From Epithemia pelagica (taxonomy: Eukaryota; Protista; Bacillariophyta), in assembly GCA_946965045.2 (NCBI GenBank), contig OX337229.1:3410001-3474000 (forward strand): a stretch of 64,000 nucleotides of DNA, in the 5' to 3' direction. Position 1 is the stretch's first letter, and each line of letters opens with the position of its first letter. Below are positions 6,270 through 59,228 of the stretch, in pieces. The notes below the pieces were generated by a model that had not been told where the DNA came from, ran no database searches, and worked only from the letters and a program-made list of their open reading frames with translations. The position numbers and the translations under genes are program-made.

Positions 6270-6711
6270 CTAGTGTCGGTGAGCGTTTTGTTGTTCCATG
6301 CCTTATGCGTTCTACACCCATACATACGCTCTATTGCCCCAATGCCCATTCTCTCAACCCCTTACCAGTTTACCTTACCAAGGTTACTAAGGCTACAGTC
6401 GTACTCCTCTACTATCCTCTAGTGCCTCCTCTCCGGGTGTGCCCATGACGGGCGAAAACGTACCGTTGGGCACATGTTTTCAACTAGGAATAACTCGATC
6501 AATATTGGCCCTACGACAGTGATCTGATGCATCTTACCAATCTTCAATGCATCCTCTGTCACCATTTGATGCTCCATTTGGCCTACATAGGACATATGGG
6601 GGTCATAGGAGCGCCTCTATTAGAAGCTTGTGGTGTGTGCAACGTGTGTGGGCACATTATGGGCACATTATAGAAACTCATGTAAAGCTCGGCTTTTAGA
6701 CTTACTACGTC

Positions 6712-7329
6712 CTAGTATTCGAACTTGTAGGCAACACTTGGCTCCTGAGTCTCAGAGAACTCAAAGGACAGGTTGCTATCGACACCAATTGACGAATTGC
6801 GCTTTCCAAATTTGCTGGACAAGTTGTCCTTGGCTGAATCATTTTCATTATTGTCGTCATCAAAGTTGCTTTGCATTTCCACGGACTTCTTTACAGTATC
6901 TGAACATTGCTGATTGTTGCATGATGTCTCAATGTTCTTGAAGTGCATCGTCATCATCAAGTCAAAGCAAGGGGGGGACGGAGATGAGGACAACTTCTTC
7001 TCGGGTGCTGGATACAAAACAGCAACATGATTCTTCTTGTGGACAATCTTGGCATGCAACGTCTTGGCTTCCATATCCTTGAGATCTGAAACGTCCATCG
7101 CCACCTTTTCCTTTGCCTTCATGTTCTTTTTCTTGGTTGCCACTGCCTTCTTAGTTTTCGTCGTCGTCTTTTTGCGATGCGACAACCGGGACGCGGGTTG
7201 GTTGGAAACGGAAACAGAAGGAGCAAGAATGGAGCTTGTGGACAGCGAAGCTGCATCAGCTCCTGAGGCCGCTTTGATGCGCGCTTGATAGCGCAAACTT
7301 GTACGACGGCCGTTGATAGTTGTCGACAT
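6712..7329 (-). CDS. Transposon cargo ORF-A, 205 aa, Lys-rich, unknown function
   Basis: ATG at 7329 lies directly behind the duplicated upstream cassette. It has the same ATGTCGACA start context as the CRD-only gene. Confidence 0.5.
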   Translation of the reverse strand: MSTTINGRRTSLRYQARIKAASGADAASLSTSSILAPSVSVSNQPASRLSHRKKTTTKTKKAVATKKKNMKAKEKVAMDVSDLKDMEAKTLHAKIVHKKNHVAVLYPAPEKKLSSSPSPPCFDLMMTMHFKNIETSCNNQQCSDTVKKSVEMQSNFDDDNNENDSAKDNLSSKFGKRNSSIGVDSNLSFEFSETQEPSVAYKFEY

Positions 7330-7576
7330 GGTGGCTCTTTGTGGTGGTGTAACAGGAGATCCACGGAAAATATGAGGCAGATGTGGGTCGTGTCGGTTGG
7401 AATAGGTTCCGAACGGACCAAAAGTCACGCCAGCCAACAAAAATTTTCCTTAATTAAGAAGTGCGCCATGAGGCGCGAAAAACTCGTCCATGCCCGCCCT
7501 CACATATCTCAAAACGAACACATAGAACTAAAGCAAACAAGAACAACAAGTTCTGTGGAGTAGTGTAGTGCAGCAC
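7320..7576. promoter_or_regulatory. Duplicated upstream cassette, copy 1 (putative promoter/5'UTR)
   Basis: Near-identical to 9261-9529 with only small indels. Contains TTTCGCGCC (E2F consensus) at 7472-7480 on the minus strand. Confidence 0.6.
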
Positions 7577-7584
7577 ACATCGGG

Positions 7585-8502
7585 GTGCCGTACGGGCCAA
7601 GAGGACTTTGGCCATCCTGGCCACGAACCTTTGGGTGTGGCCGCGGACGAATAGTAACTGGTTCCCACCAAGGTGGATTCTTCTTCTTCGCCTTCATTGC
7701 GAATGATGGCGGTGGTGCGGCCAACAATCTCGTCATGCTCAATGTTCCCGTGGTCAAACCCAAAATCAAGGAAATCACGTCGCTTGGTGTCGCCTTTTGT
7801 GCCGGATTGGCCACGCGAGTTTGGGACAGTGTCGATGAAATCAAAACCTTGTGGGCCGTGTCCCAAACCTACCTGCCCCGCATGACGGAAAAGGAACGAC
7901 ACCGCAATTGGAGTGGATGGAACAAAGCGGTTTTGAAAAGTCTGGGGTGGATCGATCCCGAAGACGAGGAGGAACAAGACCGACAAGAGACTAATACGAG
8001 TACCGCCCGAGTGGAGCAATTCACCCGTGACAATCGGAACCGGTTCCTCCAGAACTGGTTTGGTGCTGGCTGGCTTTTTGGAGGCGTCGATGTGGTTGCT
8101 GCTCATGACCGAATGACTCTTGTCATTCTTGGTTGCCGGAATCGCCTTGTTCTTGATGGGTTTCTGTGGCACTTCTTGCCGCAGACAAGACGGCTGTGGT
8201 GTCATCAAACGACTCTTGTCGTTGATGTTGTCGTGGTCGTTGTTGCGGCTGTGGTGCTTCTTGGTGACTTGGACGTCGTTGTGTCGGTTGTGGTGCTTGT
8301 TGTTGTGGTTGGCGTGCCTTGTTGGAGGAGGAGACATGCGCCAATTCGGCAGCCAATATCATTTGCTTGGTATCCTGATTTTCTTGAAAAAAATTTTGCG
8401 CCAACACATCGAGAGTTTTTCAAAGAGTATCTTGCGTTCGTCTTCATTCATGCCCGTGGTGGAATAGGACGGAACTTGCTGGACGACCCCTTGATCGTTT
8501 GA
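7585..8502 (+). CDS. Possible transposon cargo ORF-B; strand uncertain
   Basis: 305-aa plus-strand ORF overlaps a 269-aa minus-strand ORF (7528-8337). The poly-Val stretch looks like the antisense of CAA repeats, so the real coding strand is unresolved. Confidence 0.25.
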   Translation: MPYGPRGLWPSWPRTFGCGRGRIVTGSHQGGFFFFAFIANDGGGAANNLVMLNVPVVKPKIKEITSLGVAFCAGLATRVWDSVDEIKTLWAVSQTYLPRMTEKERHRNWSGWNKAVLKSLGWIDPEDEEEQDRQETNTSTARVEQFTRDNRNRFLQNWFGAGWLFGGVDVVAAHDRMTLVILGCRNRLVLDGFLWHFLPQTRRLWCHQTTLVVDVVVVVVAAVVLLGDLDVVVSVVVLVVVVGVPCWRRRHAPIRQPISFAWYPDFLEKNFAPTHREFFKEYLAFVFIHARGGIGRNLLDDPLIV

Positions 8503-8712
8503 CTTGGCGACACTCTTGGTATTACTTTGGTGGGCCACCTTTTTGCCTATGTCAATTTCAATTTGGCAATCAAGAAATTGACTATGTAGATATCCTTAAA
8601 GTTCGAACTGTATGGATGTAACTTCAAATAGAACTATGTATTGGTCTTACCTAATCATGTATCGTGTATTTTCATTTTCATAGTACTAAATCATAGAGCA
8701 ATCGTCGTGAAA

Positions 8713-9270
8713 TCAAGCTGTGTTCTGTTGTTGCATTCGGAATCTGTGCTCCTCAACACAGGTGCGGTTCATCCCAGGACGAATCCTGTTACCGTTGCAT
8801 AGTCCAATACCTTTGGTGGTCTTGGTCTCGTCCGTTCCCGGTACCTTGCGGGTCTTCGTTTTAGCAAGACAAACAGGATGTGCGCAAATTGCTCTCGTCT
8901 TCATCAAACAGATGACGCATCGACGTGTGCGTGGTCGTTCGTTGCCATCCGCATCCTGGACTTGTTCGGGATTTGGCATGGGCCTGTGAGACAAGTGAGA
9001 CAAGAATCCAGCTGGCGGATCTCCAGAGTGGCAAAGAAGACACGACACAGTACCATCATCCTGAACTGTCAATGACTCTGCTGGGGAAACACTGGGGAGC
9101 GAATCAACAACTGAAATCGGAGGGCATCTGCTCAAGCCAGCACCAGCAGTTGAGGCCCCGAACTGAGCCATAACAGCCTCCTCCGGCATCTTCTTCGCGT
9201 ATCGCATGGCCTGTTCTGTAGGCGACTCAGCGTCGACGACATTGGAAGCAATATTGGGGCTTGTCGACAT
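8713..9270 (-). CDS. Stand-alone paralog of the transposase C-terminal Cys-rich domain (CRD), 185 aa
   Basis: Aligns with the last ~200 aa of the transposase (CVIC/CAIC, CAHPVC/CGHPAC, LCNGNRIR/ICNGNRIR, CVEEH). Has its own ATG and a duplicated 3' flank (8585-8712 vs 10222-10350). Confidence 0.85.
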   Translation of the reverse strand: MSTSPNIASNVVDAESPTEQAMRYAKKMPEEAVMAQFGASTAGAGLSRCPPISVVDSLPSVSPAESLTVQDDGTVSCLLCHSGDPPAGFLSHLSHRPMPNPEQVQDADGNERPRTRRCVICLMKTRAICAHPVCLAKTKTRKVPGTDETKTTKGIGLCNGNRIRPGMNRTCVEEHRFRMQQQNTA

Positions 9271-9529
9271 GGTGGTCTTCTTCTCTTTTGTGGCGTTGTT
9301 GTTCCTGTAACAGGAGATCCACGGAAAATATGAGGCAGATGTGGGTCGTGTCGGTTGGAATAGGTTCCGAATGGACCAAAAGTCACGCCAGCCAACAAAT
9401 TTTCCTTAATTTATTTAGAAGTGCGCCATGAGGCGCGAAAAACTCGTCCATGCCCGCACTCACAAATCTCAAAACGAACACATAAAAAAAGCAAACAAGA
9501 ACAACAAGTTCTGTGGAGTAGTGCAGCAC
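9261..9529. promoter_or_regulatory. Duplicated upstream cassette, copy 2 (putative promoter/5'UTR)
   Basis: Near-identical to 7320-7576. E2F consensus at 9432-9440. Lies between the divergent CRD-only ORF and ORF-C. Confidence 0.6.
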
Positions 9530-9648
9530 CCATCGACAGACATAGTAGTTCTTTGGTAGAAGCACGACACGACGGCAAGTAAGTAAACAATGCTGTTAAA
9601 ACCGTCTCTCCAACAAGCACTCACACTTTGCATCAATTGTCCGGCAAG

Positions 9649-10227
9649 ATGAATTCAACGAAAGGAAGCAAGAGGTTTGAGACGATGAAACTCGTCAATG
9701 GGTTCATAGTGGTTTGCGATGGTGGCCAAAAGCTTGACACAAAGGGGGAGACAGTGACAATGTTTGGAGAAGCGGGGGTGAACGTGTACATGAAGAGTGC
9801 TGGAGAATGTTCTACCGATGGTCGGTTGATTGTTGATCGTGGTGTGTTGCTGTTGCAACGAACTTATTTGTCTCGAGTCAACACGAATGCAGTCTCAATT
9901 CGCTTCTTTGACAGGACCAAAAAGGATGATTCTGTCCCAGAGCTAGTCATCCCACTGCAATACATCAACAATCAACTTGATACAACGATTCTTCAGTCAA
10001 GTAGTGGCAAAGTTGTCAAGAGCAAGATCGTGATTGCTACGACACACTCACTTAACACCGTGATGACAATGGAGCCCATGGTTGTCACGGTTAAGATGAG
10101 TGTCGTTGGAGCCACGACGTTTCTGAAACTTCTCAACGAGAAGCTTTCTAAATCTGTTGAGGGAAAGGACGATGACAAGACTGTCAATACGGTGATCAAG
10201 AAACTGACTGATCCTATGCCTTTGTAG
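9649..10227 (+). CDS. Transposon cargo ORF-C, 192 aa, beta-rich, unknown function
   Basis: Clean ATG-to-TAG ORF with normal globular composition, convergent with the transposase. Confidence 0.6.
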   Translation: MNSTKGSKRFETMKLVNGFIVVCDGGQKLDTKGETVTMFGEAGVNVYMKSAGECSTDGRLIVDRGVLLLQRTYLSRVNTNAVSIRFFDRTKKDDSVPELVIPLQYINNQLDTTILQSSSGKVVKSKIVIATTHSLNTVMTMEPMVVTVKMSVVGATTFLKLLNEKLSKSVEGKDDDKTVNTVIKKLTDPMPL

Positions 10228-10350
10228 GATATACTTGTAGTCCGAACTATTGATGTAACTTCAAATAGAACTATGCATTGGTTTTACCTAATCATGTATC
10301 GTGTATTTTCATTTCCGTACTAACAAGTTCATAGAGCAATCGTCATCAAA

Positions 10351-13300
10351 TCATTCTGTTGTTTGTTGTTGCATCCGTAGAATCTCCATCTGGATTCTAT
10401 GCTCCTCAACGCAGGGGCGTTCCATGCCCTCCCGAATTCTGTTCCCATTGCATATACCTACACCCCGAAGGATCTTGAGTTCCTCCGTACCCGGGATCTT
10501 TCGGGTCTTCCTTTTTGCAAGACAAGCAGGGTGCCCGCAAATAAATCTTGTTTTCATATTGCAAATGGCACATCGACGCGCACAAGGTCGTGCCTTGGAA
10601 TCTGCATCGACGCTTGTGTCTGGATTGCGGATTGGTTGGTGAACGTGAGTGGGAGGAACTGACGGAACGCCAGAGTTGCAAGGAAGGCACTGGGATGGGA
10701 GAGAAGAAGCAGCATCAACTTCAAGCACCGACAATGATTCTGATGGGGATACAATGGGGTGCTCTGTGGATTCCAAATCAACGACCGAAATTGGAGGACA
10801 TGATCTCAAGCCAGCAGCACCGCCAACAGTGGAGGCCCCGAACTGTGCTATTAAGGCCTCCTCAATCATCCTCTTTGCATATTGGGTGGCCTGTTCTGTG
10901 AGAGACATGGGCTGCTGCTGGGAAGCACCATCGACAACATTTGATGCAGCAATATTGGGATGAACCTGTCCTCGTGTGTTGACATTGTTGTTGAATTGAT
11001 TGTGGGTAAGATCCCACGCCAAACAATCTGCAAAATGCTCAACTCCTCCCGAGACAGGTTTCTGTTGTGCGCCCAAATGAAACTTCGTGGCAAGAAAACA
11101 ATCAACCACAGTGGTGCCGATGATTGTTGAGATCAGCCGAAACCATGGGTTTGGCGTTTTCCAATGCATCTCAAGACGTAGCACACCTTGTCGAAGATGG
11201 TTGTGCATGTCAATGAGGTTCGCCGCCCTAAAGTAGATTGACAAACATCTAGGCCGTAGGACGCGGCGCTCTCGTACATTGCCATGTTCATCCGCATACC
11301 TGGCTACGTATGGCAAGCCAGGCTCCGTCGTTTCCGCATCCCTGGACATTGCAAACAGCAAGGTCTTCTTCGAATTGTACTTGTATGCAATGGCAACCAG
11401 GTTGACGTTGGTTCCTGGTGCCATGCACTCCATCACCAGGTACGCCCCAGATGGAAAGTTCTTCATCTCTTTCTTAAGTTGCGCATGCGGGAAACAGCTT
11501 GTGTTCGATTTGATGGAACAGATGCATTCTGGTGATAGTGGATTGTTTCCCCGCTCTTTGTCTACGCACAGGGCGTATGTCCGAGGATCGCGAGCCGTTG
11601 GTGCTCTTGGTTCTCGGTACATGCACTTGAGCGACTCAACAAGCTTGACGCTTCCGAACCAAGAGTCAGCACAGACGAGAGACCGCAGGCTCCCTTGATT
11701 CTGTGCTTCGACTCGCTCCAACACTGCCTGACCCGTGTACTCGGAGCCCTCTACCAAGCGAAGCGATGTACCTGCAGTCGGGCCGGCCTCAGGCATGAAT
11801 TTCTTTTTCCGCATCGGGACCTTCCCTTCCTGTATCTCAAGGAAGAGAAGACAACCTGTTGCTGTGTCACCAGACACCTGTTGAAACAGAACAGAACAAA
11901 ACAAAACAACAACCAAACAGATGAGTTGTTGTGCACAATGGTCAGAACCGAACGCTCAAATCATCTCCCTACCTTGAATTCGGTGCCCAGTGGCTTCGGT
12001 TTGCGCTTAACGTATGACAGGTGCGGGAGTCTCGACGTTTTCGTCGTCCTCGGTTGAAACGCACTCATGGCCTCATCCAATGTGATGGTCGACGAGGCAG
12101 CAATGGTCTTACGGCGGTTGTTGTTGAATCCACTGACCAATGGCTTGATCTCGTTCCATTTTTTTCCGCGTTCATCGCCTTCAAAGGCATGAGGAAGCAC
12201 CTCTTTGATGTCAAAGAAACGCGTCTTTGACATCACGTCCATGCCAGCTTTACTGGCGTTTACCTTTGGTGAGAACTGCCGACGCGCCGAGCCATCATCA
12301 TCAAAGAGACGAATACCGCCTTTGTGGCATGGGGCCGCTCCGATGATGATCCCCCAGAATGCCCACCACTCATGCTCGGTAACAGAGCGGAGATGACGGC
12401 TCCGGACTCTGCCTTGGTTGCGCTCGCTGATTGCTCTATTCAACTTATTAAGCTGATCTCTCCAACTCCCTGTCAACAAGCAAGAGAACAACGTGAGAAA
12501 CCACTACAATCACCATCTGAGGAAGCGATTTGGGACACTCGACAATCAACGAATTACCTGGCCATAGATGGATCAACAGGCGCATAAAAGGGAAGTCATA
12601 TTGTTGGTTTATGGTTGATAAGTTTGAAGCTGAGAATGACTTGTGGAAGTCAAAGCCAATCACGCCAACCTGTTCAAACTCTTCGACGGGGTTGTCAGGT
12701 GCTATGTCGCCGTCGACAATTTGCCACTTGAACACACGGTTGTCGTGTATCTTACGAAGATCATTCCTCCCCGTAAGTCCCAGTGTCTCTTCGTTGTCTC
12801 CATCAAACAACACATCCCACAGAGGTGTACCGGGAACACTGTCGGGGTGTTTCCCGGTGACCACACCAAAACGTGGATTGTGTTGTTTGTTTTCGCGGAC
12901 TCTGTCCCCAATCTCAATGCAATTTTCTGTAGATGCCGCGATGTCCACAGTCCAGTTTTCATCAATCAGCTGATTCTTCCTTGTAATGTACCTCTCATAC
13001 CTGCGGCGATGCTCTTGTCCGCTCTCAATTTCATTTGCAAGCGCAAGGCTGTTCGGATCGATGGCATCGTCATCATCCGAAAACAAGAACGGGAAGTCTT
13101 CCGTGTCGTTGAAATAATCGTCCAACGACACGTCGGACACATCGTCCTCGTTGTTTGTATTTTGTTGGGTCTGGCCTGTCTCCCCAATTCCATGGATGCT
13201 TTGACTGTTGCTGCTCAATGAACCGTCGGACAGGATTGTCTCGACTGCTCGTTGGTTTCCATCAACTGCAGTCTGCACTGCCGGGTGAACAGTGTCACCA

Positions 13301-14070
13301 GCACTACTGTTGTCATCATCCATTGATTGTGTCGGACGGTTGTTGTTATTGATGGCTGGTTGGGCAGGTGCTTGCTGTCGTTGAGTTTCCGGACCACCAG
13401 TCACCGCAACCTGCAAATCGTTGTTGTTTTCATCCTCTCGTTCTTCAGCACGTTGTTGCTGGTTATTGTTCACCAATGGTTCTACTTCAAAACCCTCCTC
13501 CTCTTCTCCATTGTTCTCACTTGTTACAGCGGCGTGTTCTTGTGGTTGCGGTTGCTGTTGTTGGAGGCTGTTTCCATTCGGTTGTTGTGGCCGCTGGCGT
13601 TGACGACGAGCACCAACAACAACTTCGATTGCTGTCAAGTTTTCGTTCTCCTCGTTGGCTCCAGACGGCGTGGTGACGAGGAGGACCTGTTGCGCATTTG
13701 ATGAGGCCTCCATTTCTTGTTCATGTTGATCTTGCTCTCGTTGTTGTGGTTGTTGTTCTTGGGTGGCCACGTGAGTAGTTGTAGTGGTCTGAGGGAGCTG
13801 CTGTCCCTGCTGCTGTTGCACTTGTCGTGCTCCTGCTGCTGGACGGTGCGGCGCACGAGAGACATCTCCAGGGAATCTATCATCTTTAGTTATTTTTCGA
13901 AGCTGGTAAGACGTCTTGTGTAAGAGCTCACCCGTCCTGCTTCCATCCCTCATGTCGAGTAGCTCAACTTCCCAAGCCTTGCTGCCCCGAGCTTGCACAA
14001 TGATCACAGGTTCATTGCTGCCCCTGATGAAAGCCCTGGACCCAGGACCAAGCCGACTTCCTCCAGCCAT
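10351..14070 (-). CDS. piggyBac-like (DDE_Tnp_1_7-type) transposase, 3 exons (12558-14070, 11973-12469, 10351-11877), 1178 aa
   Basis: GT-AG introns 12470-12557 and 11878-11972 restore one stop-free frame (LWPG|SWRDQ; GTEFK|VSGDTATG). Catalytic motifs are TLDEAM, CADSWFGS and IDMHNH, plus KRKPKPLG and a C-terminal Cys-rich domain. Confidence 0.93.
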
Positions 14071-15116
14071 TCCTTCTTCTTCGTCGTCGTCTGTTTTGTC
14101 TTGCTCTTATCACTACCCTCGACACTGTCGTTCTCTCGTTGTCGTGTCGTCGTGCTCAAGAAATTGACACTTTTTGTAATGATTCCCATTACAAAAAGGT
14201 TCAAATACTTGAACGCAAAAATCTTCCATGCATCATCCCTCATCCAGATGTCCTGATGAACAATCCCGATGGGGACTGTTCAAATAGCACAAGAACATGT
14301 GTTGCCATTGTATGATTGTTGGATTGGTGTGTGTGTTCAAAATTTCGGGGTACATTTTTGTCAAAAACCCCGTGGGGTTCGCACTTCCGAATCAGCGCCG
14401 ACCTGGACACGCCAGGCCGGACATGGCCGGAACGTGGCTGGGAAAGTCGACCATGGGACAAAAAATGGCGCGAAAGTGTTGCAATGCATCGGCCAAGAAT
14501 GTCTCGACGTCTTATCATGGTCATAGGACTGTCATGCGACCTCCCATAATGGTGGGCCCACATGTGCCCAAGTGTCCCCAACTGTGCCCACATGCACAAT
14601 CACGGTGCACAAGCCCCTAATGGAGGCGCTCATATGACCTAGATATGTCATATATGGGTGTCATGGAATATCAAATGGTGACAGAGGATGTCTTGAAGAA
14701 AAAGTTTGAGCATCCACATGTTGCCGTAGGCCTAATATTGGTCATGTTCTATCTAGTTGAAAACATGTGCCCAAAGGGTCGTTTTGACCTGTAATGGGCA
14801 CACGGCTAGAGGAGGCACTAGTAGTAGGAAGCCTCCAATAGCTAAAATAGAGAGAGGAGTCTACTCCTTGTAGTTTGAGTACGAGGTAGATGAAGAAAGT
14901 GTCTCTAGAGTAGGTAGGCAGGTAGTAGGTACTTGCTTTTTGACAACGTCAGGCCACGTAGGCAAGCAGTTTGAAATCTGTTGAATGAAGTTTCTCACCG
15001 TTAAGACCGACCCTCATTACTCATTTTCTTACTCCACGTCTCTTGACCATGGTTTATTTGTGCACGAGTCTCGTGGAACTCAACTGATCAAGCAGGCGCT
15101 CAGAAATTTTATCGAA

Positions 15117-58174: not shown

Positions 58175-58679
58175 TAACACGCTCGCGGTCAAATCAAACG
58201 ACAAAGCACAAATTGTGATACTCTATAATTCATCTTTGTCGACCCTGGGTGTGATTGCCTGTTGAGCACCCTTTCCCCTTTCCCTTTCGCCTCTCTCTAA
58301 AAAGTTGTTGGAAGTTGGAAGCCACTTTCAACCGCGACCGCGACGTCATGCCATGCGGGGAGAAATGCGAACATGGGCAATAATCTTTTCATCCAATGAA
58401 AGATTCCCGCCAGTCATCCTACGGTTACAAATCAGTTGCATTGACACGTACTTTATGAACAATACTAGTACACATTGTGTTATACTACTTATTTTGGTCC
58501 ACACACTTATGCTAGCGACATTCGTTCTTGTTCTTGCTATTATTTTATTGGGCACCCTGCAAATTTCGCTGATTGTTGTGATTGTTGTGCGCTTTTGCCA
58601 ACCTTTGTCGTTGTTCCACAGTTCAACAGATAGAAGCAACGAGTCAATCTGAAGGGCCTACTAACTACCCTACTTGTAG

Positions 58680-59097
58680 TGCCTCGTCTCGGGTTGTGCC
58701 CATTTCGGCCTAGAAACACCCTTTGGGCACATAGTTTCAACTAGATAGAACATGATCAATATTAGGCCTACGGCAACGTGTGGATGCTCAAAGTTCTTCT
58801 CCAAGACATCCTCTATCAACATTTGATACCCCATTGCACCCATATATGACATATCTAGGTCATATGAGCGCCTAGCCAAAAACCGAGCACAACCCCCCAA
58901 AGGAGGTGCTATGGAGGCACAGATATGTCATATATGGGTGCAATGGGGTATCAAATGTTGATAGAGGATGTCTTGGAGAAGAACTTTGAGCATCCACACG
59001 TTGCCGTAGGCCTAATATTGATCATGTTCTATCTAGTTGAAACTATGTGCCCAAAGGGTGTTTCTAGGCCGAAATGGGCACAACCCGAGACGAGGCA
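58680..59097. mobile_element. 418-bp MITE with perfect 177-bp TIRs derived from the right end of the piggyBac-like element
   Basis: 58680-58856 is the exact reverse complement of 58921-59097. Aligns ungapped to 14817 backwards with ~26 mismatches in ~194 nt by hand. Flanks are GTAG and CTAG. Confidence 0.95.
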
Positions 59098-59228
59098 CTA
59101 GCCCCGAGTTGTTTGCTCGTTGCTTGTTCGTAACCGCTCCAATTCCGGTGTTGCGTTTCAAGTCTCTTCAACTGGAAAGTCGTTAGGGAAACTGTAGATC
59201 GAAGACATCTTATAGCGAAAGAAACAAT

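Follow-up and report, generated by a model that had tools for sequence, protein, structure and literature searches.

The 64,000-nucleotide stretch of Epithemia pelagica DNA analyzed here (contig OX337229.1, positions 3,410,001 to 3,474,000; hereafter the window) carries at 6423-14817 an element of 8,395 bp with TG...CA tips and CTAG at each flank. We conclude, at a probability of roughly 85%, that this element is an autonomous, recently active DNA transposon belonging to a divergent clade of diatom elements within the piggyBac superfamily. Three genes are conserved in this clade; they encode a transposase of 1,178 amino acids (aa) and two smaller proteins from open reading frames (ORFs) designated ORF-B (192 aa) and ORF-C (∼200 aa).

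Results

Element boundaries and target site

The left boundary reads cct CTAG followed by TGCCTCCTCT from 6419, and the right boundary reads AGAGGAGGCA followed by CTAG tag to 14821. When the two ends were aligned to each other by blastn they showed ∼75% identity across ∼250 bp, and a repeat finder returned two inverted-repeat blocks (6419-6518/14722-14821 and 6541-6632/14608-14699), each 80% complementary. The octamer TGTGCCCA (the GGGCACA motif) occurs four times in each end, in mirror-image positions. All 12 of its sites in the window fall in the element ends or in a related miniature element, as compared to 1.84 expected, and none of 100 shuffles reached 12. The first-pass annotation had described TG...CA termini with CTAG on both flanks, imperfect terminal inverted repeats of ∼240 bp, and repeated GGGCACA motifs in the ends, and all of these were recovered in our analysis.

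Paralogous elements were identified by protein search with transposase exon 3, and all lie on long contigs of the public assembly ENA ERZ21939226, in which L007 and L008 represent the window's own locus. A further contig of this assembly, L009 (ctg1349l), was retrieved via a small neighboring ORF; it is collinear with the window on both sides at 98% identity and is without the element. Its empty site reads CTACTATCCT CTAG TAGTAGGAAGCC, with one CTAG as compared to the two that surround 8,395 bp in the filled allele. Because the other haplotype contains a single CTAG, the insertion is hemizygous and its true ends are 6423 and 14817. The features of the ends are as follows.

6419..6422, no strand: target-site duplication, CTAG copy 1; a single CTAG is present at the same site in the empty allele L009
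6423..6667, no strand: terminal inverted repeat, ORF-C end; tip TGCCTCCTCT; four TGTGCCCA sites, at 6438, 6467, 6649, and 6660
14573..14817, no strand: terminal inverted repeat, transposase end; four TGTGCCCA sites, at 14563, 14583, 14766, and 14795
14818..14821, no strand: target-site duplication, CTAG copy 2; from the flank sequence and the empty allele

The search for empty sites, which had been proposed as a check along with these boundaries, therefore came out in their favor, as did a comparison with other family members: five further elements (L001 and L003-L006) have both ends and terminate at the same nucleotides. L002 has one end; a second end was sought in L002 and in L010 and found in neither. 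Every family member has TGCCTC...GAGGCA tips, and CTAG precedes the TGCCTC tip at 13 of 13 full-element ends, representing six independent elements; the DNA outside CTAG is unrelated between members. These tips are shared by five diverged sister families of this genome, each with CTAG on both sides. Two hallmarks of piggyBac, the CCC...GGG tips and the TTAA target, thus failed in this family.

Transposase

Three open segments on the minus strand, when joined, give 3,534 nt (1,178 codons) with no stop, which reproduces exactly the three-exon gene model of the first-pass annotation.

14070..12558, minus strand: transposase exon 1; long, largely low-complexity N-terminal extension
12557..12470, minus strand: intron 1, 88 nt, GT..AG; position conserved, length and frame variable in paralogues
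12469..11973, minus strand: transposase exon 2; D636 and the Pfam DDE_Tnp_1_7 match
11972..11878, minus strand: intron 2, 95 nt, GT..AG; conserved position in six paralogues, internal stops
11877..10354, minus strand: transposase exon 3; D741, D893, and the C-terminal Cys-rich domain (CRD)

Both predicted introns are supported by paralogue comparison. The protein sequence on either side of each junction (HLWPG/SWRxQL and KPLGTEFK/VSGDTATG, with the slash marking the intron) is conserved in all six members, and the intervening 80-100 nt are bounded by GT and AG, differ in length and reading frame from member to member, and contain stops. A 5-bp indel between the window element and L001, a second copy considered below, falls within intron 2.

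Exon 2 matched Pfam DDE_Tnp_1_7 (PF13843) at 28.8-29.3 bits (gathering cut-off, 22.4). Exon 3 has relatives among metagenomic and diatom proteins, P0025 (E = 1e-28) and P0027 (E = 5e-21), both of which match the same Pfam model over positions 4-344. Three aspartates, D636 (LDEsMS), D741 (DSWFGS), and D893 (iDxHNxxRQ), show no variation across 10 clade members, the Pfam-matching ones among them, and a set of C/C/C/C/H columns near the C-terminus, predicted to form a CRD of the cross-brace zinc finger type, is near-invariant across 18 aligned relatives. Judged from these sequence comparisons, the transposase represents a deeply diverging branch of the piggyBac superfamily; both the DDD triad and the piggyBac-like identity that had been assigned from the sequence were upheld by the exon 2 match, the Pfam-matching relatives of exon 3, the invariant aspartates, and the Cys-rich tail. 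An identity of the CACTA/En-Spm or Tc1 type, as suggested by the tips, was ruled out by transposase homology. By homology the element is a piggyBac despite the failure of TTAA and CCC...GGG, and it does not represent a new class.

The N-terminal extension of ∼500 aa has no match in Pfam, and its residues ∼300-504 are conserved both in the family and in Epithemia clementina. Separately, weak, sub-threshold leads (score 0.71-0.78) to small beta-barrels of the Tudor/Agenet/SH3-like kind were seen at residues ∼13-60 and ∼383-450 of the extension (12559-14070, minus strand).

Second copy and sister families

L001 is the same 8.4-kb element elsewhere in the genome. It is 99.43% identical to the window element; the two differ by 27 substitutions and 6 indel events, and no transposase exon is disrupted. 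The two haplotypes are only 98.0-98.1% identical in the flanks; because the window element and L001 are closer to each other than this, the family has moved recently. The suggestion that the element is potentially autonomous is thus well founded, as the ORF is intact, the insertion is hemizygous, and a 99.4% identical copy is present elsewhere.

The basic size in the family is 6.4-7.6 kb, with three genes. As compared to L002, the window element shows 94% identity from ORF-B through a gene encoding only a CRD (8149-10420; see below) and ∼83% elsewhere, including the transposase, while the ORF-B genes of L003 and L004 are near-identical (synonymous divergence, Ks, 0.008). Both the mosaic relationship with L002 and the L003/L004 identity point to recombination or gene conversion among family members. 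Genes of other mobile elements were also observed near family members, namely a Harbinger-type DDE_Tnp_4 (L001 21275-21581), a MULE transposase (L005 1-880), and a Copia-type RVT_2 fragment (L002 19608-20012); an interruption by such an element may explain the missing end of L002.

Accessory genes

The ORFs were sorted by an all-against-all comparison of stop-to-stop ORFs across six elements, which identified two conserved genes besides the transposase.

6715..7329, minus strand: ORF-C, 205 aa; mostly disordered, K/S-rich, with conserved end motifs
9649..10224, plus strand: ORF-B, 192 aa; convergent with the transposase, predicted PH-like fold

ORF-B is found in every family member (63-95% identity), with a ratio of nonsynonymous to synonymous divergence (Ka/Ks) of 0.12-0.27. 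ORF-C has conserved motifs at its N-terminus (MSTxINGRRxSLR) and C-terminus (SxDSNLSFEFxETQEP) and is present in L003-L006 at 39-49% identity (Ka/Ks, 0.19-0.48), with a further homologue in L010; no ORF-C homologues were found outside ENA ERZ21939226. All three genes, with ORF-B again convergent with the transposase, were likewise found together in the more distant L010 family, whose transposase is 42-47% identical, and in E. clementina an ORF-B homologue adjoins a convergent, related transposase. The partnership is therefore old. The three to four additional ORFs described in the first-pass annotation all exist, and two of them (ORF-B and ORF-C) are conserved genes under purifying selection; the term multi-component thus holds for two accessory genes conserved in this way across lineages. 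The remaining ORFs fared differently and are discussed with the block that contains them.

In L010, a 54-bp sequence occurs upstream of both ORF-B and the transposase (7808-7861 and 12715-12768; 94% identical, same relative orientation), which suggests that the two genes are co-regulated.

An exhaustive profile search of 1.84 billion representatives returned only 29 relatives of ORF-B, among which there was no free-standing host copy. ORF-B has no match in Pfam, Ran_BP1 included. A first structural model, built from 6 sequences, was unusable (mean predicted local distance difference test score [pLDDT], 36.6), and the sub-threshold C2-like lead was dropped in favor of a confident AlphaFold (AF2) model from 23 aligned relatives (pLDDT, 83.9; predicted template modeling score, 0.78). 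The modeled protein forms a beta-sandwich, with a C-terminal helix as its cap. Fold searches (Foldseek, VIA-align) placed it in the PH-like superfold, with Ran-binding domains (RanBDs) ranking best: the RanBD of RanBP3 aligned over 117 of 118 residues (Z = 12.2; root-mean-square deviation, 2.9), RanBP2 and Nup50 also matched, and a Nup50-type protein in AFDB was found at E = 4e-5. EVH1 (Z = 11) and the pICln, GLUE, and TFIIH-p62 PH domains scored nearly as well as the RanBDs. Because all of these matches share only 6-15% identity with ORF-B, the fold class alone is established.

Secondary block and miniature element

The block at 7568-9526 is a secondary acquisition, consisting of a duplicated ORF-C upstream region, a copy of the transposase tail, and a glycerol kinase fragment. 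It is this block of ∼2 kb that enlarged a three-gene element of 6.4-7.6 kb to 8.4 kb.

7348..7568, minus strand: ORF-C upstream region, 221-bp direct repeat copy 1; TTTCGCGCC at 7472-7480
7690..7983, plus strand: captured glycerol kinase fragment, residues ∼400-492 of ∼497; within a 305-aa ORF at 7585-8502
8716..9270, minus strand: CRD-only ORF, 185 aa; partial duplicate of the transposase C-terminus
9306..9526, minus strand: 221-bp repeat copy 2, upstream of the CRD-only ORF; TTTCGCGCC at 9432-9440
58676-59101, no strand: miniature foldback element, 426 bp (listed core 58680..59097, ∼418 bp); TGCCTC tips

The two copies of the 221-bp repeat are 90-99% identical. The CRD-only ORF, one of the additional ORFs of the first-pass annotation, proved to be a partial duplicate of the transposase. 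It retains all Cys/His zinc ligands, is restricted to the lineage of the window element, L001, and L002, and is closest to the transposase tail of L002 (Ks, 0.17), its evolution being close to neutral (Ka/Ks, 0.84). The fragment at 7690-7983 matched PDB glycerol kinases by phmmer (E = 5e-17), with a weak Pfam FGGY_C match; it encodes the last ∼90 residues on the strand opposite the transposase and is surrounded by low-complexity sequence. The 269-aa and 305-aa ORFs (7528-8502) were rejected as accessory genes, as they overlie this fragment and the low-complexity sequence.

An E2F-site-like sequence, TTTCGCGCC, was observed at 14467-14475, ∼400 bp upstream of the transposase start, and it also precedes the starts of ORF-C and the CRD-only ORF, at a distance of ∼110-150 bp. 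Its positions are shared by L001, L002, and L004, and it may be a cell-cycle promoter element common to these genes.

The miniature element has two TGTGCCCA sites per arm and is closest to the ends of L006 (88-91%). Its left flank is GTAG and its right flank CTAG. No empty site for it was found in ctg1349l (ENA ERZ21939226), which is 100% identical to the window at this location and contains the element too.

Discussion

Relationship to known systems

The element resembles the piggyBac of Trichoplusia ni (PF13843; PMC7351741) in its transposase homology, DDD triad, C-terminal CRD, and sub-terminal repeats, as well as in having a palindromic 4-bp target centered on TA and an empty site compatible with seamless excision. 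It differs in its target (CTAG as opposed to TTAA), its tips (TGCC...GGCA as opposed to CCC...GGG), and its size (8.4 kb as opposed to 2.5 kb, with a transposase of 1,178 aa that includes the ∼500-aa N-terminal extension). Also unlike T. ni piggyBac, it has two introns, two conserved accessory genes, and a core that has diverged past the recognition of exon 3 by Pfam and PDB searches. A few piggyBac and Kolobok families carry a second protein of the KolX/P2X7-ballast-like type (Kojima 2022, PMC9587614). The present element is similar to these in combining a DDD transposon with a small conserved second gene, but ORF-B has neither a Cys-rich ballast motif nor a Pfam match and is predicted to be PH-like.

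The captured host glycerol kinase fragment in 7568-9526 is reminiscent of Pack-MULE transduplication, and a transposase copy reduced to its DNA-binding domain and placed behind a duplicated promoter region is reminiscent of the KP repressor type of the P element. Unlike the KP repressor, however, the CRD-only ORF is near-neutral (Ka/Ks, 0.84) and its protein is putative. PiggyMac and Tpb2, the domesticated piggyBac nucleases of ciliates, generate 4-nt overhangs centered on a conserved TA and tolerate other outer bases, which shows that NTAN sites can be processed by a piggyBac core; these are domesticated excisases without ends of their own, whereas here the system is a mobile element with a strict CTAG. 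No SET-like or 2-oxoglutarate dioxygenase domain was matched in Pfam by any ORF of the element. We found no report in the literature of a CTAG-targeting or PH-fold-partnered piggyBac, a search that did not cover the repeat databases Repbase and Dfam.

Proposed mechanism

By analogy with T. ni piggyBac (PMC7351741), transposase dimers would bind the TGTGCCCA repeats of each end, and the inverted TGTGCCCA pair located 20-50 nt from each tip is the probable counterpart of the palindrome that is bound there by a dimer of the Cys-rich domain. Excision would proceed through hairpin intermediates with 4-nt overhangs, and because CTAG is palindromic, the donor site would reseal seamlessly. Integration would then take place at an unpaired CTAG tetranucleotide with a 4-bp stagger. 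The target specificity of T. ni piggyBac has been ascribed to an intrastrand contact between T0 and A3 (PMC7351741). CTAG keeps the central TA of TTAA, and its complementary C0-G3 pair could replace the T0-A3 contact, which would account for the switch in a simple way. ORF-B could, for instance, be an adaptor that binds Ran or peptides and assists entry into the nucleus or access to chromatin.

Of the roles considered for ORF-B and ORF-C, we favor that of element-encoded cofactors or of proteins at the interface with the host; as putative adaptor or cofactor proteins we hold them at somewhat less than even confidence. More tentative still is the full scheme, in which the clade switched its strict target from TTAA to CTAG and became a multi-component system whose transposase needs, or is helped by, ORF-B and ORF-C, with the end motifs of ORF-C as possible ligands of ORF-B. 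If true, such a system would offer a seamless cut-and-paste tool with an orthogonal target and would be the first piggyBac with dedicated cofactors.

Several points weigh against our interpretation. Sequencing runs matching 6650-12600 behave as genomic assemblies, with unspliced contigs of up to 509 kb, and the splicing and expression of the transposase are predicted. Exon 3 alone matched neither Pfam nor the PDB piggyBac sequences in profile searches; its assignment is transitive, passing through P0025 and P0027 to Pfam, and P0027 itself gave only a marginal match in PDB, to piggyBat (E = 0.58). D636, D741, and D893 would correspond to D268, D346, and D447 of T. ni piggyBac by motif rather than by structure. 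With respect to the accessory genes, the fold matches of ORF-B are at 6-15% identity and PH-like folds are functionally diverse, a role of ORF-B and ORF-C in transposition is a candidate one, and L001 carries a 2-bp insertion near the end of ORF-B (equivalent of 10179) that alters the last ∼15 codons, a segment that is the poorly conserved tail. Finally, because the CTAG palindrome is continued by the inverted tips, a 4-bp duplication and a 2-bp TA duplication are inseparable from sequence, and the flanks of the miniature element fit either a TA duplication without mutation or a 4-bp duplication with one diverged base.

Alternative explanations

The alternative that survives best, and which we consider possible though doubtful, is that ORF-B and ORF-C are cargo serving silencing evasion, regulation, or addiction and are unrelated to the transposition reaction. 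The piggyBac transposases studied to date work alone, the fold of ORF-B is of a generic protein-interaction type, ORF-C is mostly disordered, and a frameshift over the final ∼15 codons of ORF-B is tolerated in the near-identical second copy L001. However, the trio keeps its order and orientation even between lineages with a transposase identity of only 42-55%, and the pairing of ORF-B with a transposase persists in E. clementina. ORF-B is also conserved more strongly than the transposase tail, and no free-standing host copy was seen among its relatives, which number only 29.

A second alternative concerns the target site. Because CTAG is palindromic and is continued by the inverted tips, the same sequence can be parsed in three ways: as a 4-bp duplication with TG...CA tips, as a TA duplication with GTG...CAC tips, or in principle as a blunt insertion. 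Under the TA parse, a 2-bp stagger would occur at the central TA of C-TA-G, the element would be GTGCC...GGCAC, and TA alone would be duplicated. This parse accounts equally well for the filled and the empty allele; the single-CTAG empty site is compatible with seamless excision by a 4-nt stagger and equally with a site that was never occupied or with a TA stagger. In addition, the GTAG/CTAG flanks of the miniature element are what a TA duplication predicts for a G-TA-G target and G...C tips, with no mutation needed. Nevertheless, we consider this explanation unlikely: a 4-nt stagger is found in every characterized piggyBac transposase (PMC7351741), and a single diverged base in the target-site duplication of an older miniature element is unremarkable. 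The outer C on the left and outer G on the right at all 13 full-element ends indicate that the outer pair is selected under either the 4-bp or the 2-bp parse. We thus prefer the 4-bp duplication, by homology with the chemistry of piggyBac.

The least probable alternative is that the window element is non-autonomous and that it and its twin L001 owe their movement to a sister family's transposase, their own gene being a well-preserved relic; expression of that gene is predicted from sequence, and the sister families have very similar tips and TGTGCCCA sites that make cross-mobilization plausible (compare the miniature element), but the reading frame of 1,178 codons is uninterrupted, no catalytic residue or zinc ligand has been lost, and the indels between the window element and L001 spare the transposase coding exons, with one falling inside intron 2.

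Significance

piggyBac is prized in genome engineering for its strict TTAA targeting and scar-free excision. Both properties have been explained by the shape of the TTAA strand in the active site (PMC7351741), and an apparently active CTAG clade, in which the outer T/A is swapped for C/G, provides a natural test of this structural targeting model and may also yield a transposase whose target is orthogonal. The co-inheritance of ORF-B and ORF-C raises the question of whether a piggyBac may have cofactors of its own that act, for example, in nuclear entry or in gaining access to chromatin. These findings are of interest mainly to transposon biologists and tool builders. For the diatom itself, the hemizygous insertion together with a near-identical copy elsewhere in the genome shows that cut-and-paste elements are currently mobile, pick up fragments of host genes, and recombine among themselves.

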